Shown: positions 6,275 through 54,342, counted from the first letter of the stretch. The stretch is 64,000 nucleotides of DNA from Prasinococcaceae sp. CCMP 1430 (GCA_013416795.1 RQSC01000017.1:41576-105575); one strand, 5' to 3'. Numbers and translations: made by a program. Notes: a model not told the origin generated them from the letters alone.

Positions 6275-8267
6275 CTACTCGTCGCCCTTGCGCTTGGCCG
6301 CGTACGCGTTGACGAGCTCCTTCTGCGTCTGCTGCGACACCGCCGCGTGGTGCGCGTACGTCATGGTGAACTCGCCCTTGCCCTGCGTCTGCGAACGCAG
6401 GTCGGTCGAGTAGCCGAACATGTTGTTCAGCGGCACGGTGGCGTTCACGACGACGTCGGACTCGTTGGACTCGCTGCCCACGATGGTGCCGTTGCGCTTG
6501 TTCAGGGAGCCGATGACCGAGCCCTGGAACTCAGTGGGCGCGGTCACCTCGACGTCCATCACTGGCTCAAGCACCACCGGGTCGGAGCTGCTGTACGCCA
6601 TGCGGAAGCCGCCCTGCGCAGCAAGCCGGAACGCAATGTCGTTGGAGTCGACGACGTGGCTGGCGCCGTCAGTGAGCACGAAGCGCACGCCCTGCACCTC
6701 GTGGCCCACCAGGAAGCCCGAGTTGCACGCTTCGCGGAAGCCCTTCTCGATGGACTGGATGAATTGCGGCGGGATGGGATTGCCCACGACCTCGTTCTCA
6801 AACTCGATCTCGGCCGAGGCGAGGCCCTCCTCGGTCAGGATGGGTTCGATGCGGCCCTGCACCTTGCCGAATTGTCCCGAGCCGCCCGACTGCTTCTTGT
6901 GCGTGTAGTCGAACGTCGCGCCCTGGCGAATGGTCTCGCGGAAGTTCACGCGCGGCTTGCCGCTCACCACCCCGACGTTGTATTCGCGATTCATGCGCTC
7001 GATGTAGATCTCTAGGTGGAGCTCGCCCATCCCCGAGATGATTGTCTGGTTGCTGTCCGGGTCGAGGTGCACGCGGAAGGTGGGGTCCTCGCGCTGGAAG
7101 CGCCCGAGCGCCTTGGAGAAGTTCGCGGCGCCCGACTGGTCCTTGGGCGACACCGCGAGCGACATCACCGGGTCAGGCGTGTGCATTGATGTCATCGCGT
7201 AGTCGACCTTGCCGTCGGTGAAGGAATCGCCCGACGCGCAGTCCACGCCGAACATCGCCACGATGTCGCCAGCCTTGGCCTCGGTGATGTCCTCCATCTC
7301 GTCCGAGTGCATGCGCACCAGCCGCGGAATCTTCACGCGCTTTCGGCTCTTCACGTTAGTGATGAAGTCGCCCTTCTTGAGCGTGCCGCTGTACAAGCGC
7401 ATGTACGTCAGCTGGCCGAACTTGCCGTCCTCGAGCTTGAATGCAAGGGCCACGGTGTTGGACGAGGCATCGCACGGCAGCACGAGCTCCTTCTCATCGT
7501 TGGCCACATCGAGCGCCTTGTTCTCCGCGTCGTTAGGCGCGGGAAGGTAGTCGACCACGCCGTCGAGCAACAGCTGCACGCCCTTGTTCTTGAAGGCGGA
7601 GCCCATCATGACGGGCGTGAAATCGAGGCTCAGCGTCGCGCGACGAATGGATTCGCGCAGCTGCTGCGGCGTTGGGTCCTCGCCCTCCAGGTAGATCTCC
7701 CCCATGGCATCGTCCACCTCGGCGAGCGTCTCAACGAGCTCGGCGCGTGCCTCGGTGGCGCGGTCTGCGTGGTGGCGCAGCATGGGCGAGCGCGGGCGGG
7801 GGGGGGGGGGAGGACGCGTCAGATGCGCGCGTCGGGAGCGTGCGCGCGCGGGTGCGCACGCCCATATCTATCCGCACTGCCGGAAACATGCGCAGCCGCT
7901 CGCGCTCGCGCGCAGCACGCACCCTTGAGGTCGTCGGGAATGGGCTCGCGGCGCACGTCGTCGCCGCGAGGGCCGTCAAAGTACACTGCTTCCATGCTCA
8001 CAAGGTCCACCACGCCTTGATGCGCGTCCTCGAGGCCGATCGGGATCTGCACGGCCGCCGCCGTGTGCTTAAGCTTGTCGCGAAGCTGCTGCATGACGCC
8101 AAAGGGGTCGGCGCCCATGCGATCGCACTTGTTGACAAAGCACAAGCGCGGCACGTCGTAGCGGCGCATCTGGCGGTCGACGGTGATTGACTGCGACTGC
8201 ACGCCGCCGACCGAACACAGCACCAGCACCGCGCCGTCGAGCACGCGCAGCGCACGCTCCACCTCCA

Positions 8268-8298
<31 letters not shown>

Positions 8299-8749
8299 AA
8301 TGTTGATCGCGGTGTCTCCCCACGAGCAGTACGTCGCAGCGGACTTGATGGTGATGCCCTTCTCGCGCTCGAGGTCCATCGAGTCCATCTTGGCGCCCAC
8401 GCCGTCCTTACCGCGCACCTCGTGGATAGCGCGGATGCGGCCCGTGTAGTACAGGATGCGCTCCGTCAGGGTTGTCTTGCCGCTGCAGGCAAAGCGTTGG
8501 GCGCGACGTGAGTCAGTCAGCGAGCGGTGGCGCGATGCGCGCACGCGCGCGCACAGCGGCGGCGGCGGCGACGGCGGCAGACACGGCAACGGCGGCGAAG
8601 ACGCACCTGTCGATGTGCGCACTGATGCCGATGTTCCGCATCTTCTCGAGGTAATCGGCGGACGCCGAGGCCGTCGACGACAGGCCGCGCGGGCCGCCGG
8701 CCGCGAGCGGCGAGCTGACGCCCCAGGGCGCAAGCGCGCGCGAAAGCAT
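6275..8749 (-). CDS. GFM1: Mitochondrial elongation factor G (exons 8749-8607, 8482-7923, 7764-6275)
   Basis: [10 protein letters not shown]|[70 protein letters not shown]-terminal mitochondrial-type presequence. Canonical splice sites restore the frame. Confidence 0.95.
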
Positions 8750-8787
8750 CGCACGCGCGCCGAACGCGCCGAGCGCCCCCGCCGCCC

Positions 8788-8949
8788 NNNNNNNNNNNNN
8801 NNNNNNNNNNNNNNNNNNNNNNNNNNNNNNNNNNNNNNNNNNNNNNNNNNNNNNNNNNNNNNNNNNNNNNNNNNNNNNNNNNNNNNNNNNNNNNNNNNNN
8901 NNNNNNNNNNNNNNNNNNNNNNNNNNNNNNNNNNNNNNNNNNNNNNNNN
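8788..8949. other. Assembly gap (N run)
   Basis: Run of n. Confidence 1.
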
Positions 8950-9035
8950 GGGCGCGCCGCGGAGGGGCGCCCCGGCGGGGCGCGTGCGCGCGCGGCGGGT
9001 GGGTAGTGTACAGGTGCGGGGCGGGCTGAGCCCCA

Positions 9036-10304
9036 CTAGCGTCGGAAGATGGCGCGCAGCAGCGCTCTCAAGAGCGAAACGAGCGCTACGGCTGCGTAGC
9101 GCACGGCGAAGTTCGCGACGACCCTGGCGACAGCTGCGAGAGCACCGACAACCACTGCAGACACCGCCTCGCTCATCGCACGCGCGTCGTCGTGCGCCTT
9201 GTCGCCACCCTCGCTGCTGCGGCTAGCGCTGCCCGCACTCGTCCGCGCACCTGGCCCTCCCACCTGCCGCCTCTGCACGTCGCGCTGTACTCTTCCGTTC
9301 GCGTAGCGGCGCTCGGTTGTCACGGTGACAAACTGGCGGCCTGTGCTGTCGTACGAGGTCTCCTCATATACACGGGTCGACACCACGCCAGGGCCGTGCT
9401 GCATCTGTCGGGACATGTCCTGAGCATGTGTGACGGGTCAGGCTTGCCGTCCGCACGTGCGCGCGTGGCGCCCGGGCGCAGCAGCTGGGCAGATAGAGCG
9501 CCACGCACCTCGAACAATTGCCGCGCAGATTTCCCAAACACCGCGCGAAAGAGTGCCTCGGCCTGCTCAGGAGTCATGCGGAAGGGGTCGGCCTGTTGGC
9601 GGTGGAATTGCCACGCGTCCTGCCGGCGCCGCCACTCCTCGTACTGCTGCTGCTCGCGCGTGCGGTACGCGCCATCCTGCTGCGCTCGCCGGCGCGAGTC
9701 CTCCCATTCGCGGCGGTACTGCCGAATGCCGCCGATGCGTGAGGTGCGCCACGATTCGTCAGAGCGCGAGGTGCCTGCAGGCATCCGAGCGGGCGCGGGC
9801 GCGGCCACAGGCGAGCACACGCGGCTGCAGGCGGGGTGTGCGCACCTGGTAATCGTTCCCCCCACGCTGCTGCTGCTGCTGCGCCCCTGAGCGTTGCGAC
9901 TGGCGCTGCTGCGATTCCCACTGTGCGCGCCGCTGGCGCGCCGCGGCGTCTGCTGCCCGAGAGCGCTCCCAGCGCGCGCGCGCGGCCGGGTCGGTGGCAA
10001 TGGCGTACGCCTCGGAGGCGCGCTTGAACTTGGCCTCTGCTGCCGCGCGCTCCGCCGCGCTGTCGTTGGAGTGTCGGTCGGGATGCCACTTCAACGCTTC
10101 TCGTCTGTACGCCTTCTTCAGCTCAGTAGGCGTCGCCGAGCGGCTCACGCCAAGCACCTTGTAGGGGTCGTCGACCTCCTCGTCGCGGGTCGCGGCGGCT
10201 GCATACGAACGCGCCTGCGCGCCATACGCCGGCGCTTGCGCGCGCGCATGCGCGTGCTCCGGCCCGAGGCTGGCAGCACGGACTGCGCCGCCTCGCCCGA
10301 GCGC
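9036..10304 (-). CDS. DnaJ (J-domain) protein with C-terminal hydrophobic segment; multi-exon, 5' end uncertain (possible ATG 10540)
   Basis: [33 protein letters not shown]...[18 protein letters not shown]. Introns near 9846-9776 and 9509-9419 join to ...[33 protein letters not shown]. Confidence 0.85.
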
Positions 10305-14700: not shown

Positions 14701-16043
14701 GGAAAGTCCCCTCCTCCCACGCTACCTGCAGCTGCTGGCCATCGATGAAAATGAAGTCGTCAACTAACTGGCGCTCCTCGTCAGGCAGCCGTTTCGAGAT
14801 CATGTTGACGCCGGCGAGCGTGATCTGGTACGCTGTCACGCTCTGGTGCTCCTTCGTGCTCAGCCGAAGGCCCTTGATCATCCTGCCCTCGGTCAGGTCG
14901 TCGAGGTCATCCTTGCCCTCCTGCGAGATGTTGATGTACACGCGCCGCGCCTCGATGACCTCAGAGGAGGGCGCGTAATCGTAGTCAAACACTTTTTGGA
15001 CCACGCCCTCGTAGATGAGAACCAGCAGCGGCAGCTTGCGAATCCAGCGCTCCTTGTCGTGCACCGACTGCGCGAAGTGGCTGTAGCGGCTGATGAGGTA
15101 CATCAGCTTCAGGTGATTCATCGTCCAGTAGTCGTCGGGCTTCTCGTGCCTATCCTTGACTTGCGGGATGGCGCCGGCCGCCCGCTGCTGCGTCGCCAGC
15201 TGACTGTCGGCGAAAGGCGACGTGAGCATGCTCGCCCCCAACCCGCCGGGCAGTTGCGATCTTTCCTGGCCCGACGCCGCCACCAGGGCTCCTGCTGCCA
15301 TCGCATCCGCCACACCCGGCGGCGCCGCAGACTGCAAGAACGCGCGCTTCTCGGGCATCATTCCCAGCAAGTTCGCCTGCCCGTCCGCAGCGCCTTGCCC
15401 TGCGCCGGCGAGGTTGGGCGCACCCCGCAGCTGTGACAGCGGGGGCCTCCTCGGCGGCCGCGCAGCGACCGGCGGCGGCAGCGTCAAGAGAGCATCCAGG
15501 TCCTCCTGCTGCTTCGCACGTTGCTCTCCGGCCACCTCGAGCGCGCTGCGCGACTGAGGGTCACTCTGAGGCGGCGAGCCCACCGACCCGGGCGGGACGG
15601 CGCCGCGCTGCCCAGCCGGCTGCCCGCCAGTGGCCTGCTGCCGCTGCTGCTGCTGGGCAGCTGCGCTCGGCACGCCCGCGCCGCTCGCCAGCGATCTCGG
15701 GGGGCCGAAGGCGCCTGCCCCTGGGATTTCGGCGCCCAGCTTGCGCTGGGGCAGCGCTTCGCTCGTTGCGGCCTCCGTCTCCTCGGAGCGCAGCGGGTTG
15801 CTCACCGTCCCGGTTGCCTGCGGCACCAGCGCAGCAATGCCCCCGACGCCCGGCGTCGCCGTCTGCGAGGCGGACGCTCCGAAACCGCCACGCCTGCCAG
15901 CCATGCCCAGCCCCGACAGCATGCTCGCGAGCGAGCCGTCGCTGGCGCCTGCCGCAGCGGACGCAGACGCGGCTTGGGCGCGCCCGCTCGCCGCAGCCGC
16001 TGCGGTCGTCGCAGCGGTGGCAGCAGCGGCGGGTCCGAGCGCC
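11764..16043 (-). CDS. Large uncharacterised membrane protein: low-complexity N-terminus, wHTH-like region, coiled coil plus 2 TM (CorA-like layout), C-terminal ubiquitin-like fold (exons 16043-13506, 13403-13097, 12716-12203, 12100-11966, 11864-11764; first exon unresolved)
   Basis: Continuous protein after splicing at GT..AG sites with CTAAC/CTGAC-type branch points. Motifs LPLLVLIYEGVVQKVFDYDYAP, NISQEGKDDLDDL, TAYQITLAG. TMs VMQVIFAGSLAFELL and MVWFIVSMLTWGLVGSIVF. Tail TYEDLREEVAIKFGV...DDEDVSRL. Confidence 0.75.
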
Positions 16044-16207
16044 CTAGGCTCCCGTGTCACGGGCACCACGCGCTCGCGCTCGCCGCGACCAGATCCTGCC
16101 CTTGCTGGGGGGCAGAGCGGAGCTCGCGTCCGCCCCGCACCCACCCTCCCGCGTTGCCCGCCCGACCGCCCTGTGGCGCACCACCCCACCCCACCCCACC
16201 CCATGCC

Positions 16208-18958
16208 ATGCGCGCGCAAACAAACCCGCAAAAGCAAGCAAAAAAAATCAAACGCGCGCGCGCGCGCTCCACCGGCCCGCAGGTCAAAACGAGTGCGTTC
16301 GAACGGGCGAGCGCCCCGGGCGCGTCGCGCTGCTTCATTGCCACGCCACACCGAGGCGGCCGTTGGGTGCAGATACGTGGAATGTATCATGTATATATCA
16401 CCCCACGGGCGACTTCTTTGTGCTTTTTGATGTGCGCGTGCGTGCTTGCGTGCGCGCGTTGGGTGGGTGACGCGGCGGGCGACGGCGGCAACGGCAGCAG
16501 CAGCAGCGACGGCGACGGCCATGGCGGCAAGGGGGAGGGCGTGTCGGACGCAGCCATGCGCGTGCGCGCGCTGCGCCTGGAGACCGCCCTCGCCGCGCAG
16601 CGCGACGCGTACTACAACCGCGGCGGAGGCGCGCTCTCCGACGACGCCTTCGACGCGCTCGCGGCGGAGCTCGACGCGCTGCGCTCAGAGCTGGGCGAGG
16701 GCGGTGCGGCCGCGCCCGTCGGTGCGGCCGTCTCCGAGGGCGCGGCCAAGTTCCGACACGCGGAGAAGATGCTCTCGCTGCAGGCCGTCAAGACTCGCCT
16801 CGACCTCGAGAGGTGGCGCGCCGCTTCGCTCGCGCGCCTCGCAAGGGCACACAAGAGGGAGGCGGAGCGCGCCGGGGACGAGCTCGTCGAGGGCGCCGGC
16901 CGCGCGCAGCATGCGCCCAGCGAGGGCGGCGGAGACGGCGGTGAGGGCGCACATCCGGTGCGCTGGGTGGTCGAGCCCAAAATCGACGGGCTCGCCGTCG
17001 CCCTGCACTACGTCGACGGGCAGCTGGTCGCGGCGGCGACGCGGGGCGACGGCACGGTCGGCGAGCTGGTGACGCGAAACGCTGCGGCCGCGGCCGGCGT
17101 GCCAGCCGCCCTCGGCGCCGACGGCGCTGACGGCCGGCCGCCGCGCCTGCTTGAGGTCCGCGGAGAAATCCTCATGACGCGGTCAGCGCTCGAGCGGTAC
17201 AACGCCGCTGCGGAGGCCGCTGGCGAGGCCGTGCTGGCCAACGCGCGCAATGCCGCGAGCGGCTCGCTGAGGCTGCTCGACGAGGAGCAGGCGGGGAAGC
17301 GCGAGCTGTCGTTCTTCGCGTATGCCATGCACCTGCCCCCGGGTGAGAATGAGCGAGAGCGCGGGGCGCTCGGAGACAGCGGATTCGATGACGGCGGCGA
17401 CGGCGTGCGCGTGTCGAGCGGCGGCGGCGCAAGCCGGGCGCTGAGGTCTCAGGAGGAGACGCTACGATGGCTCGCGGCTGTGGGCTTCGCGACCGCCCCG
17501 GGGTGGTCTGCGCACGAGTCGTTCGAGGCCGCCGCCGACGCCGCCGAGGCACTCATCGCCGCGCGCGACGAGTGCGACTTCGACACGGACGGCGCCGTGC
17601 TGAAGATGGACAGCGCCGAGACGCAGCGGTTGATGGGATCGACGTCTTCCGACCCGCGATGGGCGGTGGCGCTCAAGCCGCCCGCGCGGCAGGCCACGTC
17701 CGTGCTCGAGAACCTGAGCGTGGCGGTGGGGCGCACGGGCCACGTGGTGCCCGTTGCGCGCGTGCGCCCGGTAGAGATCGGCGGCGCGCTCATCTCGCGC
17801 ACGACCCTGCACAACGTCGGCCACGCTCTGCGCATGGGCGTGCGCGAGGGCGACACGGTCGTGATTGAGCGCGCCGGCGATGTTATCCCGCGCGTACTTG
17901 GACCGGTCGAAGGGCTTCGGGGCGAGCAGGCGGACGGCTTCGTCGCGCCCTCCAAGTGCCCTGGCTGCGGCAGCGTCCTGCACGTCGAGCAACACGGCCC
18001 TGTTCTACCCGAGTGGGAGCGGGTTGTCGCAGCCGCTGGCGGCGATGTCAGCGTCGAGGACAGGGGCGAGGAAGACGGTGAGATGGACGAAAGCGATGGG
18101 CAGAGCGTGCTCACCATGTGGTGCCGCAACGTGCAGTGCCCCTTGCGCACTGGCCGCGCGCTGCAGCACTTCGCCCGGGCACTGAAGGCAGGCATCGGCG
18201 AGAATACGGTGGAGCTAATGGTGGAGGCCGGCATCGTGTCATCGCCACCCGACTTCTTTCGCCTGGCCGCCCACCGCGAGGCCATTGAGGCCCTGCCGCG
18301 CATGGGTGAGCAGCGCGTGAATCGCATCCTCGGCCTGCTGGATGACGCAAAGGTGCGCATGACGCCAGCCGACACCATTGCGGCGTTGGGTATCCCGGGC
18401 ATCTCCAATGCGCTGGCGGCGCGCCTGGCTGTGCAAGTTGGCACCCTTGCGGGGCTCGCCGAGGCAGACATGGCGGACATTGAGCTGGACGGCGCAGGCG
18501 AGGCGTCCGTTGCGAAAGGCAAGCTCGTGGCGTGGATGGACGCCAACCGTGCCATGGTTCGTGATCTGGCGGCGTGCGGGCTGGGCGCGAGAGACCCCGT
18601 CGCGCCGGCGGGCTCGCTTCGCTCTGGTCTGAGCGCCAACGCCACGGCCACAGCACGTGCGAGCATCGTTGAGGGGGGCAACGCGCGCTCGGGCCCGTGG
18701 GCTGGCAAGCGCGTGCGCATCACGGGCGCAATTGAGGGGCACACGCGCGCGACGGCTGCCGCAGTGGCGGAGGCGCTCGGCGCGAGGGTAGTTTCCTCGG
18801 GCGCGCGGCCCGACGTCGTGGTCGCGGGTGCAAAGCCCGGGAGCGCAGCCACGAAGTGGCCCGAGGCGTCGGTCGTGCTCGCGGCCGACTTCCTCGCACT
18901 CGCATCCGAGCACCTCAAGCCCACTCCACCCCCGGAAGAGCATGCGGGCGACGAGTAA
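16208..18958 (+). CDS. ligA: NAD+-dependent DNA ligase (bacterial LigA type), intronless, probable organelle-targeting N-terminal extension (start uncertain)
   Basis: Domain Ia RDAYYN...LSDDAFDAL; motif I EPKIDGLA; TRGDGTVGE; EVRGEIL; NARNAASGSLR; DTDGAVLK; PRWAVALK; VGRTG..VPVA; TLHN; RAGDVIP; C4 Zn finger CPGC..CRNVQC; HhH ALGIPGI; BRCT GKRVRITGAI..VVVAGAKPGS. Confidence 0.95.
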   Translation: MRAQTNPQKQAKKIKRARARSTGPQVKTSAFERASAPGASRCFIATPHRGGRWVQIRGMYHVYITPRATSLCFLMCACVLACARWVGDAAGDGGNGSSSSDGDGHGGKGEGVSDAAMRVRALRLETALAAQRDAYYNRGGGALSDDAFDALAAELDALRSELGEGGAAAPVGAAVSEGAAKFRHAEKMLSLQAVKTRLDLERWRAASLARLARAHKREAERAGDELVEGAGRAQHAPSEGGGDGGEGAHPVRWVVEPKIDGLAVALHYVDGQLVAAATRGDGTVGELVTRNAAAAAGVPAALGADGADGRPPRLLEVRGEILMTRSALERYNAAAEAAGEAVLANARNAASGSLRLLDEEQAGKRELSFFAYAMHLPPGENERERGALGDSGFDDGGDGVRVSSGGGASRALRSQEETLRWLAAVGFATAPGWSAHESFEAAADAAEALIAARDECDFDTDGAVLKMDSAETQRLMGSTSSDPRWAVALKPPARQATSVLENLSVAVGRTGHVVPVARVRPVEIGGALISRTTLHNVGHALRMGVREGDTVVIERAGDVIPRVLGPVEGLRGEQADGFVAPSKCPGCGSVLHVEQHGPVLPEWERVVAAAGGDVSVEDRGEEDGEMDESDGQSVLTMWCRNVQCPLRTGRALQHFARALKAGIGENTVELMVEAGIVSSPPDFFRLAAHREAIEALPRMGEQRVNRILGLLDDAKVRMTPADTIAALGIPGISNALAARLAVQVGTLAGLAEADMADIELDGAGEASVAKGKLVAWMDANRAMVRDLAACGLGARDPVAPAGSLRSGLSANATATARASIVEGGNARSGPWAGKRVRITGAIEGHTRATAAAVAEALGARVVSSGARPDVVVAGAKPGSAATKWPEASVVLAADFLALASEHLKPTPPPEEHAGDE

Positions 18959-19325
18959 TGCCACATGACACAACCTGCTCAAGGCTGCAGGCGCCATCCG
19001 CGGCATCGATGTACACTACAATGGCGCTCAAACACTCTCAGGACTGGTGCGCGCGTCACCTGGCTGTAAAATTCGTTCGTGAAGCACAGCGAATACGTTT
19101 GTCGTGCTCCCAGCGCTCGTCGCAAGGGCTGCTCCATTGCACTCAGGCAGCTGGCAGTCGTGTGGATCTCGCTCAGCGCGCACTGGCGCACGCACGCCAC
19201 GAATCAGTCGAGAGTGCGGGGGATTACTGCGCCCTTCGCATCGCACGGCAGCGTGAGTGAGCTCTCGTGCACATGTCGAAGGCAGCAAGATTGTGTGCGG
19301 GACAGCAAAATTGCCGGCCGCGCGC

Positions 19326-19955
19326 CTACAGATCGGGGTGGACAGTCGTCCACGCCAGCGGCTCGGGCTTCTCCCAAGACACCTCCTTTGTCATCTCGTT
19401 GTTGTAGTAGATGTGGCCACCGTTCTTCTCGCCCTCCGGGATGGTGACCTCCTTCCACGCCTGGCGCTCGTTGGTGGGCTCCCACACGCTCTCGCCGGTG
19501 CTGGGGTCCGTCCAAAAGGTGCGCCCTGTGGCCTCATCCACGGTGCCGAGGTCGGCCGGGCGATCCCACGTCGACTGGCCGGTGATGTCGTTGTGCCAGA
19601 AGGCGCGGCCGGACTTCTTGGACCAGGCCAGCGCCGCGGGCTTCTCCCACGTGGCCTCCTTGGTCACCTCGTTGAAGTAGAATTCGCGTCCGGCGTTCTC
19701 CGCGCCCACGGGCACGGTCGTCGCCATCCAGGCGCTCTCGACCGGCTTGTCCCACGAAGACTTGCCTGTCTTGGGGTCGACAAAGTACTTCTGGCCCGAG
19801 CCACTGGGGTCGTCGTGCCCGAGCACCGCGGGCCGCTCCCAGGTCGACTCGCCCGTCACCGAGTTGTGCCAGAAGTGGTCCTGATCGGCACCAAGCGCGA
19901 GCGACACGAATGCGCACCCGAGCACGCCCGCAAGCGCCAGCGCGGGCCTGCCCAT
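19326..19955 (-). CDS. Signal-peptide protein made of six WW-like repeats, C-terminal HPDL
   Basis: MGRPALALAGVLGCAFVSLALGA signal peptide. Repeats FWHNSVTGESTWERP, YFVDPKTGKSSWDKP, FYFNEVTKEATWEKP, FWHNDITGQSTWDRP, FWTDPSTGESVWEP, YYNNEMTKEVSWEKP. Confidence 0.85.
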   Translation of the reverse strand: MGRPALALAGVLGCAFVSLALGADQDHFWHNSVTGESTWERPAVLGHDDPSGSGQKYFVDPKTGKSSWDKPVESAWMATTVPVGAENAGREFYFNEVTKEATWEKPAALAWSKKSGRAFWHNDITGQSTWDRPADLGTVDEATGRTFWTDPSTGESVWEPTNERQAWKEVTIPEGEKNGGHIYYNNEMTKEVSWEKPEPLAWTTVHPDL

Positions 19956-20201
19956 CGTTGGCTGTGCGCGCACGGCGGAAGGGACCGAGGAAGGGGGGTG
20001 GAGCGAGGGAGATAGGGAAGGGACGTGCGCGTGAGCGGAGCGCACCGAGGTGTCGCAGCGGCGGGCGGGCGGGGCGCGCGTGGGGCGGGTGAGCGGAGCG
20101 CTGCCGCGCGCGAGCTCGAGCGCGAGGAGCTCGTAGCTCTCGCCCGTGACGCGGGTGCGGCGCCCTGCGGCGGCGGCCGGGCGAGGGGACGAGTGCACGA
20201 G

Positions 20202-20727
20202 ATGGCATCGCCCGCGCCCGCGGGCGGCGACCCGCGCCGCCCCGCGGCCGTCCAGAAGTGGGTGGAGCCCGTGTACAAGCAGGAGGACAAGCCAATGGAC
20301 TGGTGAGGCAGGGGCGCTGCGCGTGGGGAGGGGGGCGCCGCATCCACTCGCTCGCTTGCTCGCTCGCTTGCTCGCTCGCTCGCGGATCGTAGTCGTTCGT
20401 CGGGGCTCCGAGCAGAGCGGTGCCCCTGCCCGTGCTCCCAGCGCAGCGCCCAATCGAAGCGCGCGACGCTCGCCGCTGACGTACGCTCCTGCCCAACGCC
20501 ATCCTCGCAGGTTTGCGACCGGCGCGCTGATGATGTCGATGACCGCGATGCTATTGCGGAGCGAGCCCGCGTCATGGGCGGCGCTCTTGCTCACCCTGGG
20601 CAGCCTCGGCAACATGCGCTACAGCGGCGCGGGCGACAGGCAGCAGATTATCACCTCGGCGCTCATGTCGGTCAGTGGCATCGCCTTCCAGCTCTTCAGG
20701 CCTGCCGCCGCGCGCGACAGCGAGTAG
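20202..20727 (+). CDS. WDR83OS: PAT complex subunit Asterix (UPF0139), intron 20303-20510
   Basis: GDPRRP...DW|FATGALMMSMTAMLLRSEPASWAALLLTLGSLGN...QQIITSALMSVSGI matches the Asterix pattern (DPRRP..., LMLK.KW.AW.A, SFAN, KQ..SS.MLS.SA). Confidence 0.85.
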
Positions 20728-36451: not shown

Positions 36452-38579
36452 TCACCCGGCGGCCTCATCGGCTGCATGCCATGCGCAGACCCACCTCACG
36501 CTGCCGTCCTCCTCGTTGCACACGGGCACGTGCCACGTAGCGCCATCACGCGCCACTTGCATGCACTCCGTGTACGGCTTGGGATTGTGCAGGTTGCATC
36601 CCAGCCTGTTGTCCTTTGTGTTCTTGCCATCGAAGTCATACTTGACCTGGTGGCGCGCGCGGTAGCGCAAGAACTCGCGCGGGCGAAGCATCTGGAAGAG
36701 GTGGTCGCGCATTTGATCGTTGCTCACGAGAAGCCCCGACTCGCCTCTGATCGCGGCGGCGTACAGCCAGTACCAGTCGTCGTTAGCTCCGCGCGGCGTG
36801 GCGAAGAGCGAGCCCTGTTTCTTGAGCTTCCCCAACACGCGTCGCCCCTCCTCAGTGCGCATGGCGGTGGACACGCGCGACTCGTGAAGGATCACAAGCG
36901 GCGGCTGGCGCGCACTGGGGATCTGTTTGGCGGTCTCGGCCACGAGATTCTCGATTTGCCGACAGTTGAAGCCGCCGCCGGCAAAGTTCTGGTTGAAGAG
37001 CGCCACGTTGGCGCCGTCGATGATGATGTCGAAAGGACCGTGGTGCTACAGAGCGCGTGCGCGGTGTGCGCGTCGCCACCCGCACAGCTGCGTCAGCACT
37101 ATCGCGTGCATGCAGCGGCCAGCTCTGCGCCAGCACGCTCGCGGGCGAGTGAGCACATCAGAGAGATTCCCAATGTCGTATGGTCGTCATGGTTCTTCGG
37201 ATGTCCATATCTACTAAAATAAAAAGACAATCATCACCTGTGCTGCAGTGGCCGTGACAGGGCGGCGCACGCGAGAGGCGCGAGTCGCCCGCACGCACCT
37301 CGAGGAATTGCTTGAGTGCCGCCAGCTGCTCCGGATTGGATGCGCGCTTCTCCGCGAGGGCTTCCACTCTCGTACTGAATTCGGCATACTCAGCGTCGCT
37401 GAGGAACTTGGCCTCAAGCTGTGTGCCGCTGAAAGGGCACTTGCCCTCCGCGCTGAGCTCGACATCCTCACTCACACGCCATCCAGCGGACGCGCCTGCA
37501 GCCCCGCCGTCCTCCTGCCGCTGCGACGCTGGAGGCGCAGCCTCGCTTTCTGCTGGGGCGAGGTGTCGCGGGTGCGGCGCGCTCTCCCTGAACCAGCGTG
37601 CGAGCGCCTCCCCCTGCGGCGGCGTGAGCATTGACACGTCGTTGAGCAGCCGGTCGAGCAGCGGCCGCATGGCAGCGGTTCGATTGGCACCCGCGGCTGC
37701 GCGCAGCAGTGCGCAAAGCTCGAAGCCAGTGGCGGGCAGCTCCTCGACGGCCGAGGAGGCCATGTGCTCAACGAGTGCGACGGCCTCGTCGTACTCTCCC
37801 TCGTCGGCGAGCGCGTCGAGCGTGGTGGAATACGAGCGGTGTTTGGCCACCACGCGCGCGTCCGCCATCTCGCGTAGCAGTGCGACCGCACGCTTCAAAT
37901 CACCGCGCGTGACCGCCACGGACGCTGCGGCGGTGTACGCGGGCTCTGTCGGGGTGCTGATGGTGGACATGAAGTCAAAGACCTCCATCACGCGCTCCTG
38001 CGCGGCGTCCTGGCCGATGGTGCTTCCCACGAATTCCTCGGCGTCGGCCTTGTCCTTGGCCGCAGCAGCAGCGGCGGCTGCCGCGCTGATGTCAGTCGCT
38101 GCGTCGCCGACCGCCTCCGTGCGCAGCAGGAATAGCAGCGCGTCGAGTTCGTGCATAGCGATGGCCTCGCCAGCCGCGCGCCGGGAGTCGAAGAGCGCCA
38201 CCGCCGCGGCTGAGTCGCGGCGCTTCACCAGGACGCCAAAGTTCTCGCCCGCCGGCCGTCGCCGCCTTTTGCGACTCTTCTTCCCCCCCTCCTGCTGCTC
38301 CTGCGGGCGCTGTCGCTCCTGTGTGTTTTCCTGGGCCACGCTCGCTCCGGGGGCGCGCGGAGACGCCGTTCCCGCTCCGTTCATGTTGACGCCGGCCCCG
38401 CGCGCACTTCCGCCGTCCGCCGACACGCTCGCTGCGCACGCGGCGCGGCGCAGCTGAGCCCCGTGCCGCGCGCCGCGCGCCGAGTGAGCTACCCCTGTGG
38501 ACACCTGACAAGCCCCCCCCGCGCTCCACGCCCGGCGCACCGCACCCGTCACCCGTAGGCGCTTGACTCCACCGACCAT
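36452..38579 (-). CDS. PRORP: Protein-only RNase P (PPR + NYN nuclease), intron 37299-37046
   Basis: PPR-like helices (PTEPAYTAAAS.., AKHRSYSTTLDAL..), GKCPFSG, GPFDIIIDGANV, TPRGANDDWYWLYAA, LVSNDQMRDH, WHVP. Confidence 0.93.
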
Positions 38580-52152: not shown

Positions 52153-53832
52153 CTACTTGCCGATGCAGAAGTTGGCGAAGACCTTGTCGAGGACCTCCTC
52201 TTTCACTTCCTCGCCTGAAACCTCCCCCAGCGCCATGATGGCCTCTCGCAGGTCCACCGTCCAGCAATCGAGCGGCAGGTCGGACTCAATTGACTGCATG
52301 AGGCTATCGACCGCCGCGGCGGCGCGCAGCAGGGCCTCACCCTGGCGTGCGTTCACCGCCCACGCGGCGCCACCCTGCACGCCTGCCGCGCTCGCGCTGT
52401 CGAGGAGCGCGGCCTCGAGCAAGTCCATGCCACGGCTGGTGAGCGCGCTCGTGCCAACCACGGCGTCGAACCTCTCTGGCACGCCCGCGGGCAGCGAGGC
52501 CACCACCTCATCACGCGCACGGAGGTCGATCTTGTTGATCACGAGCACTTTCGCCGCGCCCGCCCCCCCCCCGCCAATGCTGTCGGCGTCAGCGGCGTAG
52601 CCGCCGCCATCGCCCGGCTGCGCGCCTTCGCTCGTGTCGGCACGGTCACCACCGACACCCGCCTCGACGCTCTCCCACACTTCCGCATCTGCGGCCGTCC
52701 AGCCGCGCTCAGCGTCGATGACCATGAGCACAGCGTCGGCACAAGCGGCCGCGCTACGTGATCTCTCCACGCCGAGCGCCTCAACCACGTCGGCGGTGTC
52801 ACCCCGTATGCCCGCCGTGTCAAGGACGCGCACGGGCACGCCCGATCGCTCCATGACGAGCGGCGCCTCGACGACATCACGCGTGGTGCCAGGGAGTTCG
52901 GTGACGATGGAGCGGTCCGAACCCGTCCAAGCGTTCAGTAGCGAGCTCTTGCCGGTGTTTGGGCGGCCGACGAGCGCCACGGCGATGCCGCTCTCAAGCG
53001 CTCTCCCCCGCGCGCACGTCGCTGCAGCGGCGCGTGCGCGTGCTCCGGCAGCTCGCGCGGCAGCGCTCACCATAGGGACGTCGAGCGGCGGCAGCTCCTC
53101 CTCAAAGTCTATGCGCGCCTCGACCTCCACGAGCACATCGATGAGTGCCTCGCGCAGCGCGCGCACCTCGTCAGCGATACCTCCGCGCGCCGCTGCGAGT
53201 GCCGCGTCCGCCGCGCGCGACGTCTTCGACGCGATGAGGCGTTGGACCGCCTCCGCCTGCGTAAGATCCAATCGGCCGTTGAGGTAGGCGCGCAGCGAAA
53301 ACTCGCCTGGCCGCGCGAGGCGGGCCCCCGCGGAGATCGTTGCCGCCAGCACGCGGTCCGGGCACACCGCGCCACCGTGGCCCTGAAGCTCGACCACATC
53401 CTCGGCCGTGAACGAGCGCGGTGCCAGCATCGGCGCTAGCAGCACCTCATCCACCACCGTGCCCTCGGCATCAACCACGTATCCGTACTCCATCACATGG
53501 GTCACGGGCGACCACGCGTCCATGTGCTGCTGCGCAGCGTCGGCACCGTGCTCCGCGGCGACGCGCAACGCCGCGGGGGTGCGGAAGCACCGCCGCGCGG
53601 CATCCACAGCGCCCGAGCCTGACATGCGCACGACCGCCACGCCGCCCTGTGTTGGTGAGGTGGCCGTCACCACCGCCGTAATGGTATCCTCGGTCGCCGT
53701 CGCAGGCAAGGTCGAACCTCCAACGTCGGGCTCGGAGGCGAACGTCGGGGCTTGCTGAGGCTGGGAGCTCCAGGCCTTCCGGGCGGCCTCGCGGAGCTCG
53801 TCCAGGTCTGGAGCCTGCGAGTCGAGCGCCAT
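52153..53832 (-). CDS. mnmE: tRNA modification GTPase MnmE/TrmE, organellar (transit peptide probably extends through n 53904)
   Basis: DTITAVVT..GGVAVVRMSG, PRSFTAEDVVELQGHGG, ARPGEFSLRAYLNGRLDLTQAEAV, GRPNTGKSSLLN, GTTRD, DTAG, NKID, C-terminal FCIGK. Confidence 0.96.
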   Translation of the reverse strand: MALDSQAPDLDELREAARKAWSSQPQQAPTFASEPDVGGSTLPATATEDTITAVVTATSPTQGGVAVVRMSGSGAVDAARRCFRTPAALRVAAEHGADAAQQHMDAWSPVTHVMEYGYVVDAEGTVVDEVLLAPMLAPRSFTAEDVVELQGHGGAVCPDRVLAATISAGARLARPGEFSLRAYLNGRLDLTQAEAVQRLIASKTSRAADAALAAARGGIADEVRALREALIDVLVEVEARIDFEEELPPLDVPMVSAAARAAGARARAAAATCARGRALESGIAVALVGRPNTGKSSLLNAWTGSDRSIVTELPGTTRDVVEAPLVMERSGVPVRVLDTAGIRGDTADVVEALGVERSRSAAACADAVLMVIDAERGWTAADAEVWESVEAGVGGDRADTSEGAQPGDGGGYAADADSIGGGGAGAAKVLVINKIDLRARDEVVASLPAGVPERFDAVVGTSALTSRGMDLLEAALLDSASAAGVQGGAAWAVNARQGEALLRAAAAVDSLMQSIESDLPLDCWTVDLREAIMALGEVSGEEVKEEVLDKVFANFCIGK

Positions 53833-54342
53833 GCCACGCACGCCGGCGCGGCGCGGCCGACGCGCGGCCGCGGACGATGGCGCGCGAGGACGCGCCCGCG
53901 GCCNGGCGCTCCCTTGCTGCAATTGAACGAGAACGACGAGAGGGGAAGAGGGAACTGGACCTGGACCTGCCTGGCTTTCCGCGCGGGCGTATCGGATACG
54001 GATCCGCGCGGGCTTCGCTTCAGGTTCGGCTTCGGGGCGTGCCGCGCATTTTCGCGTGTGCGATCCGACCTCGGGCCCCGCGCCGGAATTGAATTTCACG
54101 CGCGCACGCACGCAACGCGCGCACGCCGTCGAGGAGGCGCGAGGCGGCGCGCGCGGCCGCGCCGCGCCGCCGGAGGACGCGTGCGAGCGGACGGACCGCT
54201 CGTGATACAAGACCCTACTTTACATGCTCGCTCGCTCGCCGGGGCCCCTCGCGCTCGCCCTCGTCGCCGTCCGACGCGCGCTCTCGCGCGGGACGTCCGC
54301 TCTCGAGCAGTCCAGCCGCAAGCGGCGAGTGGCGCCGGCGGA

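Follow-up and report, generated by a model that had tools for sequence, protein, structure and literature searches.

The open reading frame (ORF) that ends at position 18958 on the plus strand of a 64,000-nucleotide stretch of DNA from the marine green alga Prasinococcaceae sp. CCMP 1430 (RQSC01000017.1:41576-105575; this whole stretch is called the window, and positions are counted from its first letter) encodes, as predicted from its sequence and from a structural model, a complete LigA-type DNA ligase dependent on nicotinamide adenine dinucleotide (NAD+) and capable of adenylation and nick sealing. The gene is a genuine, transcribed and intronless nuclear gene of this GC-rich alga, and its sequence places it as a fast-evolving, divergent new member of a LigA clade of chlorophytes, Chara and Marchantia. 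We regard the identity as LigA and the placement in this green clade, taken jointly, as very probable. The explanation that we favour as a whole, namely a LigA of the green clade that functions in an organelle, appears likely.

Identity and domain architecture of the ligase

The claim of a complete LigA in one intronless ORF had been made in a preliminary description drawn from the DNA sequence, and profiles, alignment and predicted fold agree with it. The reading frame is unbroken down to its stop codon (18956-18958), and the methionine at 16556 is the opening residue of domain Ia, which defines a minimal coding sequence (Table 1). Pfam recovers the adenylation domain (PF01653, 1e-53), the OB fold (PF03120, 4e-23, with 76 of the 79 profile positions covered) and the helix-hairpin-helix (HhH) family HHH_5 (7.5e-07), and the LigA equivalog NF005932 of NCBIfam scores 440.6 bits, above its cut-off of 369. 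Among PDB sequences, phmmer matches the E. coli LigA (2owo, 1.9e-74) in four collinear stretches, which begin in domain Ia, end at residue 658 (of 671) in the E. coli enzyme and include the BRCT domain. The AlphaFold2 model, built from a 33-row alignment, has a mean predicted local distance difference test (pLDDT) score of 81.7, and every stretch of low confidence is one of four lineage-specific inserts. Its top Foldseek matches are full-length LigA structures, with a template modelling (TM) score of 0.76 normalised to 2owo and 794 alignment columns against the full-length 9a6z_B model.

The YY and KxDG motifs and the OB, HhH and BRCT modules of the preliminary description are all found in the alignment or the fold. 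In domain Ia, the stretch AYYNRGGGALSDDAFDAL (motif YY...DDAFD) has Y, Y, D, F and D at the columns of E. coli Y22, H23, D32, Y35 and D36, which we take to be the residues binding the nicotinamide mononucleotide (NMN) moiety of NAD+; the phenylalanine at the Y35 column is also seen in two bacterial rows (P0003 and P0125). The adenylation domain contains the KIDG motif with the motif I lysine (16979-16990), TRGDG, EVRGE, NARNAASGSLRLLD, DGAVLK and PRWAVALK; five of these (KIDG, TRGDG, EVRGE, DGAVLK and PRWAVALK) align with E. coli K115, R136, E173, K290 and K314, and the catalytic motif columns are invariant in alignments A2/A5. Two low-complexity inserts (residues ~90-131 and ~262-292, pLDDT <50) lie in the same region. 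The C4 zinc finger with a long acidic insert, as first described, is also there: its four cysteines (C468, C471, C523 and C528, with codons at 17957, 17966, 18122 and 18137) are kept in invariant columns, and the acidic insert of ~43 residues (about 17981-18109) widens the spacing between the second and the third. This insert is common to the closest relative (P0002) and to P0121, and is absent in bacteria. Further downstream, one HhH hairpin has GAG for GIG, and a disordered linker insert of ~35 residues precedes the BRCT domain, in which GKxVxxTG is conserved and G717, G724, R731, G742 and G758 are invariant. Residues 715-790 of the model form a confident BRCT-like beta-alpha(-beta) fold (pLDDT 85-95).

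Some profile scores weigh against this identification. TIGR00575 reaches 391.2, below its cut-off of 444.45; three further lineage-specific LigA equivalogs score far under their cut-offs; and the isolated zinc-finger (PF03119) and BRCT pieces have no Pfam match. The isolated domain Ia piece matches Pfam Nlig-Ia weakly (E=0.01). We attribute the equivalog scores below cut-off to strong divergence and to the four inserts. Since Pfam scans of isolated pieces were uninformative, we assign the zinc finger, BRCT and Ia modules from the full-length alignment and the fold.

Table 1. Features of the ligase gene and its surroundings, in window positions.
Feature	Positions	Strand	Evidence
ORF with the full LigA	15521-18958	+	ORF list
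Minimal LigA coding sequence (800 aa and stop)	16556-18958	+	ORF list, Pfam, NCBIfam, E. coli LigA alignment, AlphaFold2, Foldseek
Domain Ia (NMN/NAD+-binding helices)	16556-16696	+	alignment blocks, two helices in the model, weak Pfam Nlig-Ia
Nucleotidyltransferase (adenylation) domain	16733-17683	+	PF01653, 2owo alignment, invariant columns
OB-fold domain	17684-17944	+	Pfam PF03120; beta strands at 378-450 in the model
C4 zinc finger	17945-18148	+	Cys positions, alignment
HhH DNA-binding domain	18149-18595	+	HHH_5; 2owo residues 428-580; model helices 529-673
BRCT domain (GKRVRITG...)	18692-18925	+	2owo alignment to residue 658, invariant columns, model
Possible 42-aa N-terminal extension (MCACVLACARWVGD...), acidic, Gly/Ser-rich	16430-16555	+	coding-like GC3 (0.88)
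Arg/Ser/Ala-rich extension of the preliminary description	16208-16429	+	no codon-position bias, no RNA contig
Stretch under RNA-library contigs	16787-19084	+	same-organism libraries and marine metatranscriptomes
Intronless gene with six WW domains, tail-to-tail with LigA	19326-20009	-	Pfam WW 1.9e-38, 6 stretches
GT..AG spliceosomal intron (208 nt) of the gene downstream of the WW gene	20302-20509	+	CTG/GTGAGG...CGCAG/G

Nuclear residence and green-lineage relatives

The composition of the gene is that of its host, as had been proposed: its codon usage follows that of the other window genes (relative synonymous codon usage, RSCU, r=0.96), its GC content at third codon positions (GC3) is 0.85, and GC is even along the 64-kb window. 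The eukaryotic flanks stand as well. The window genes are cellular and include those for an F-box/MATH protein, an LSD1-like SWIRM amine oxidase, a PRORP-type PPR protein, Alg9, a 2977-aa HYDIN/CFAP-like flagellar protein, an intron-split EF-G and MnmE. In the gene downstream of the WW gene, the GT..AG joint 20301/20510 was found in RNA contigs of four runs, including runs that cover LigA, which establishes both that the contig is eukaryotic and that these runs contain RNA. The ligase itself lies under RNA contigs of the same organism (X15: 16787-17006, 17264-18796 and 18778-19084) and under two others (X17, 17702-18702; X16, from a marine metatranscriptome, 18049-18972). These contigs have no internal joints on LigA, and its 3' untranslated region (UTR) reaches at least 19084. 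In addition, 14 DNA runs of the organism contain 97% of the words sampled from the stretch.

The arrangement recurs in an uncultured relative, as a metagenome contig of 5.1 kb (L001) carries a 63%-identical LigA followed, tail-to-tail as in the window, by a 61%-identical WW-repeat gene. The L001 ligase has, in domain Ia, a 102-nt GT..AG intron (L001:1661-1762) that contains an in-frame stop as well as a polypyrimidine tract, and because of this intron the gene caller missed exon 1 of the P0002 protein. The window gene is without it at the matching place (16690-16700); judging from the two sequences, an intron was gained or lost between these close relatives.

A word-based search returned, beyond two near relatives, only bacteria at 29-37% identity. 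In an exhaustive search, the best matches, named by exact look-up, were proteins of Chlamydomonas sp. UWO241 (KAG1671906), Marchantia polymorpha ("DNA ligase (NAD+)", A0AAF6AVH1/PTQ31770, with four independent records on a 31.9-Mb contig) and Chara braunii ("DNA ligase (NAD(+))", A0A388L3X9), to which profile searches added Chlamydomonas eustigma, Volvox africanus and Picocystis salinarum (A0A7S3UBZ3). These green relatives are nuclear genes on large eukaryotic scaffolds, and the ESM Atlas has a LigA cluster in which Chlorophyta is the commonest known phylum. Our main tree (IQ-TREE, LG+C20, 56 rows and 677 columns, with oxygenic cyanobacteria not among the rows) unites the 13 green rows in one clade, at an ultrafast bootstrap (UFBoot) of 100 and an SH-like approximate likelihood ratio test (SH-aLRT) of 99, and resolves subclades of streptophytes, Chlamydomonadales and Picocystis. 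A second tree, with 41 viral rows among its 121, recovers the clade at SH-aLRT 99. A shared deletion of 1-3 residues that follows the HF(A) motif, accompanied by the loss of "RxAMDIxG", is found in 12/12 green rows of alignment A5; of the 21 bacterial and unnamed non-green rows, 20 lack it, and the exception, from Pacebacteria, has its own 2-residue gap. A very long stem (1.5 changes per site) leads to the window LigA and its uncultured relative. In the tree, the window gene stands beside Chlamydomonadales at 92/74, a pairing that we do not claim given that both are GC-rich and were flagged by the composition test.

The possibility of a bacterial contaminant, or of a recent transfer private to this alga, had to be weighed, as bacterial matches reach identities of no more than 29-37% and the first word-based search gave no named close eukaryotic match. 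It is refuted, and we give it practically no credence: the gene shares its contig with spliced eukaryotic genes, it is present in RNA contigs and in 14 DNA runs, its codon usage is that of the host, and synteny and an intron are found in the 63%-identical relative, while the green clade with its shared deletion includes other green plants at 100/99. The checks on contamination and transcription called for at the outset thus point to a resident, expressed gene. For the same reason of shared ancestry at 100/99 with chlorophytes, Chara and Marchantia, the idea of a lineage-specific acquisition has to be given up: the green LigA family is old, annotated and little studied, and the window gene is no one-off acquisition. 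The preliminary description had allowed for a lower novelty if the gene turned out to be a well-described ligase conserved across green algae; it is indeed conserved there, but the family is annotated only, not well described. The accompanying statement that the ligases of land-plant organelles are ATP-dependent overlooks the LigA of Marchantia.

The neighbourhood offers a few further observations. The WW gene is covered by metatranscriptome contigs (19216-19895), well so in marine metatranscriptomes, and its likely start (MGRPALALAGVLGCAFVSLALG...) resembles a signal peptide by eye. A short tandem run (GCTCGCTTGCTCGCTCGC...) lies at 20340-20385, inside the 208-nt intron. The window also carries genes of bacterial or organellar type for EF-G (6275-9036, minus strand, split into two ORFs by a short gap that is probably an intron), for the PRORP-like PPR protein (37158-38579, minus strand) and for MnmE/TrmE (52153-54210, minus strand), and we attach no significance to their nearness to LigA.

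Start codon, N-terminus and candidate organellar role

In-frame ATG codons are found at 16208, 16382, 16430 and 16556. The preliminary description had placed the start at 16208, adding to the enzyme an Arg/Ser/Ala-rich extension on which it based an argument for targeting. This start is disfavoured. GC3 amounts to 0.85-0.90 in the core and to 0.88 in 16430-16555, and falls to 0.69 in 16208-16381, with no difference among codon positions there; 16382-16429, which includes TGTATATATC, is AT-rich (GC 0.31-0.50, GC3 0.50). Moreover, an out-of-frame ATG (16203) lies ahead of 16208. No RNA contig was found on 16105-16466, where gaps between contigs prove nothing. Based on the missing codon-position bias and the upstream out-of-frame ATG, 16208-16429 is likely untranslated, and it most likely represents a promoter or 5' UTR shared with a divergent minus-strand gene. 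The latter (13433-~15950), of at least ~750 aa and without a Pfam family, has in common with LigA an AT-richer intergenic region of ~500 bp (about 15950-16430).

The coding-type codon bias begins near 16430, which suggests that the true start is probably 16430 or 16556. Between these two lies an out-of-frame ATG (16521) in a strong initiation context (GGCCATGG), which bears on the question of which LigA start a scanning ribosome can use. It opens a 183-codon overlapping frame (window 16446-17072, +1 relative to LigA) that is probably meaningless ORF noise of high-GC DNA. One metatranscriptome contig fits the window from 16554 on, with unlike letters upstream, and also joins to 15592; it may be chimeric and is given little weight. 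An exact gene product on record was found for none of three start choices, and exact-pattern scans of metagenome contigs around 16556-16640 gave no match.

The bacterial type of the enzyme, together with the N-termini of its relatives, makes a function in organelles plausible. Extensions ahead of domain Ia measure 35-95 aa in chlorophytes and 315-460 aa in streptophytes, and most of them are basic and acid-poor in their first 40 residues: the first 40 residues of the L001 ligase have 11 R+K and 0 D+E, and the extension of P0121 is carried on an mRNA-like contig. By analogy with presequences of this kind, we propose that LigA may seal nicks in organellar DNA (plastid and/or mitochondrial), a role to which we give slightly better than even chances. 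Several points weigh against it. A start at 16430 would yield an acidic, Gly-rich N-terminus (6 D/E in 40 residues), and a start at 16556 no N-terminal extension at all; the extensions in streptophytes exceed ordinary transit peptides in length by far; and the searchable literature yielded no data on the localisation of any clade member or on its activity. Organelle-atlas supplements contain no DNA ligase entry. By simple composition, a basic, acid-poor presequence results for the window LigA only with the poorly supported 16208 start, so that the window copy would be an exception to the presequence pattern of the clade unless translation starts upstream of 16430.

The window LigA might instead act in the nucleus or the cytosol, for instance as a repair ligase recruited through its BRCT domain beside ligase I, and not be imported. 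In favour of this, the better-supported starts give an acidic extension or none, the window N-terminal region (including the 42-aa candidate extension) does not align with the presequence of the closest relative, and the BRCT domain is kept. Yet most clade members, L001 and P0121 included, have the basic, acid-poor presequences described above, nuclear nick sealing in eukaryotes is normally carried out by ATP-dependent ligases (PMC6728418), and the mRNA 5' end leaves room for an upstream start or exon. We therefore consider a nuclear or cytosolic role unlikely, if the most serious of the alternatives. The organellar role, which we prefer, thus remains the most reasonable part of the original proposal of an organellar or endosymbiotic ligase; its targeting argument is not retained, the N-terminus from 16430 being acidic, Gly-rich and unlike a transit peptide. 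A broader scenario, in which the green LigA clade would be the NAD+-run plastid (or plastid and mitochondrial) ligase of green algae and bryophytes, ancestral to Viridiplantae and lost in seed plants, is conceivable but falls somewhat short of even chances. If true, reviews of organellar replication would have overlooked it.

Possible origin, proposed mechanism and comparison with known ligases

The distribution across chlorophytes, Chara and Marchantia fits a single ancient uptake of a bacterial-type (or phage-type) LigA in the green lineage, which would have been followed by vertical descent. The preliminary description looked to an endosymbiotic or horizontal source, and a gene derived from the cyanobacterial ancestor of the plastid, or from the alphaproteobacterial ancestor of the mitochondrion, would suit an old clade whose members fall on both sides of the deepest split in the green lineage; presequences on a bacterial replication enzyme are also a classic mark of endosymbiotic transfer. 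Our searches and trees gave no sign of an affinity to either ancestor. The nearest named bacteria in our searches are Chloroflexota, Rhodothermia and Gammaproteobacteria, with no cyanobacteria among the named top matches. In the 56-row tree, the alphaproteobacterial rows, two in number, group inside Proteobacteria and a long way from the green clade, and the Cyanobacteria-related row of Tanganyikabacteria (L142) is not adjacent to it, in a sampling without oxygenic cyanobacteria. The red alga C. merolae, furthermore, is reported to have a single ligase gene, of eukaryotic type (PMC4166229). Endosymbiotic origin from either ancestor hence appears improbable to us, and this part of the earlier proposal found no support in the trees at hand.

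Which sequences border the green clade depends on the sampling: in the 121-row tree they are a group of IMG/VR viral contigs with long branches (SH-aLRT 94), and in the 56-row tree a sequence from Pacebacteria (97/94). We suspect both placements to be long-branch artefacts, and therefore name no donor. The viral contigs with LigA (L026, L035, L039, L043, L053 and L057, of 39-394 kb) encode very divergent ligases, whose flanking genes (internal head protein, sliding clamp, NinI-like phosphatase) resemble those of tailed jumbo phages. The Candidatus Pacebacteria LigA (P0016, L153:2223-4268) comes from a clearly bacterial contig with prepilin-type genes; its zinc-finger insert ends in "DDQSV" (compare "DGQSV" in the window LigA), its 2-residue gap falls at the site of the green deletion, and it adjoins the green clade in the 56-row tree and not in the 121-row tree. 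The likeness may be due to convergence or to long-branch attraction, or it may hint at the donor.

The viral neighbours in the larger tree, and the fact that mimiviruses, some iridoviruses and entomopoxviruses encode LigA (PMC2806865), could also be read as traces of an integrated giant virus (Nucleocytoviricota). We reject this origin as very improbable: the 64-kb window holds ordinary cellular genes of uniform GC and codon usage and no viral hallmarks were recovered, the viral rows next to the green clade stand on very long branches and have flanks like those of jumbo phages rather than giant viruses, and Marchantia and Chara carry their members of the clade on chromosome-scale scaffolds.

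From homology, the proposed enzyme of the green clade would work as follows: the KIDG lysine would take up an adenylate group from NAD+, whose NMN moiety would be bound by domain Ia; adenosine monophosphate (AMP) would then be transferred to the 5' phosphate of the nick; and the OB, zinc-finger and HhH domains would clamp the DNA while the nick is sealed. Its substrate may be organellar DNA, in lagging-strand joining and excision repair, a more tentative step than the others.

For this window alone the novelty is modest, as it adds one more, unusually divergent, member to a family present in databases; the published LigA of Ostreococcus and the UniProt name "DNA ligase (NAD(+))" mean that the family is already known, although functionally unstudied. 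Its significance lies rather in the retention of a complete bacterial-type ligase across green algae, Chara and a liverwort, contrary to a 2019 review of plant DNA repair according to which NAD+ ligases occur only in eubacteria (PMC6728418). The family provides a testable candidate for organellar nick sealing in relatives of Chlamydomonas and in Marchantia, and, LigA being the target of known antibacterial inhibitors, these might serve as organelle-specific probes.

Among known systems, the functional analogue of the proposed role is LIG1, an ATP-dependent enzyme from another branch of the superfamily. Dual-targeted LIG1 of Arabidopsis and C. merolae is the enzyme to which the sealing of organellar nicks is currently ascribed in plants and red algae; its targeting is set by alternative start codons, and the Arabidopsis enzyme was not seen to be targeted to plastids (PMC4166229). 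Reviews of organellar replication name no ligase but LIG1 and describe that of the plastid as unclear (PMC4166229, PMC3914683). Ulva sp. offers a case of an NAD+ ligase gene of bacterial type in a green-algal plastid: its chloroplast genome has a LigA-like orf3 that resembles the LigA of Rickettsia (PMC4388391); this gene differs from ours in being organelle-encoded and independently acquired, and we set it apart on its published description. The LigA of giant viruses (mimivirus, entomopoxviruses and some iridoviruses) likewise provides NAD+-dependent ligation inside eukaryotic cells, but it is viral (PMC2806865), whereas the context in the window is not, and the green clade groups with nothing that resembles a giant virus. 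Nuclear LigA genes of eukaryotes were already public in 2009, when the LigA tree of Yutin and Koonin included, without comment, those of Ostreococcus lucimarinus, a marine green picoalga, and of Dictyostelium discoideum (PMC2806865); we treat them as possible counterparts of the window gene.

The green homologues annotated as "DNA ligase (NAD(+))" belong to the same clade and share the deletion, and P0121, and more weakly Chlamydomonas UWO241, share the zinc-finger insert. The window LigA and its uncultured relative differ from them by a long stem and an identity of 33-36%, and the N-terminal extension of the window protein is much shorter, or there is none. Measured against the bacterial archetype, E. 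coli LigA (PDB 2owo/5tt5), the window enzyme is only ~30-38% identical, is encoded in a eukaryotic nucleus, carries four inserts (after Ia, in the adenylation domain, in the zinc finger and before BRCT), and has a 3-residue deletion after HF(A), the loss of "RxAMDIxG" and Phe for Tyr35. Both nonetheless have the same six modules in the same order, with the lysine motif, the NAD-site residues and the four cysteines.

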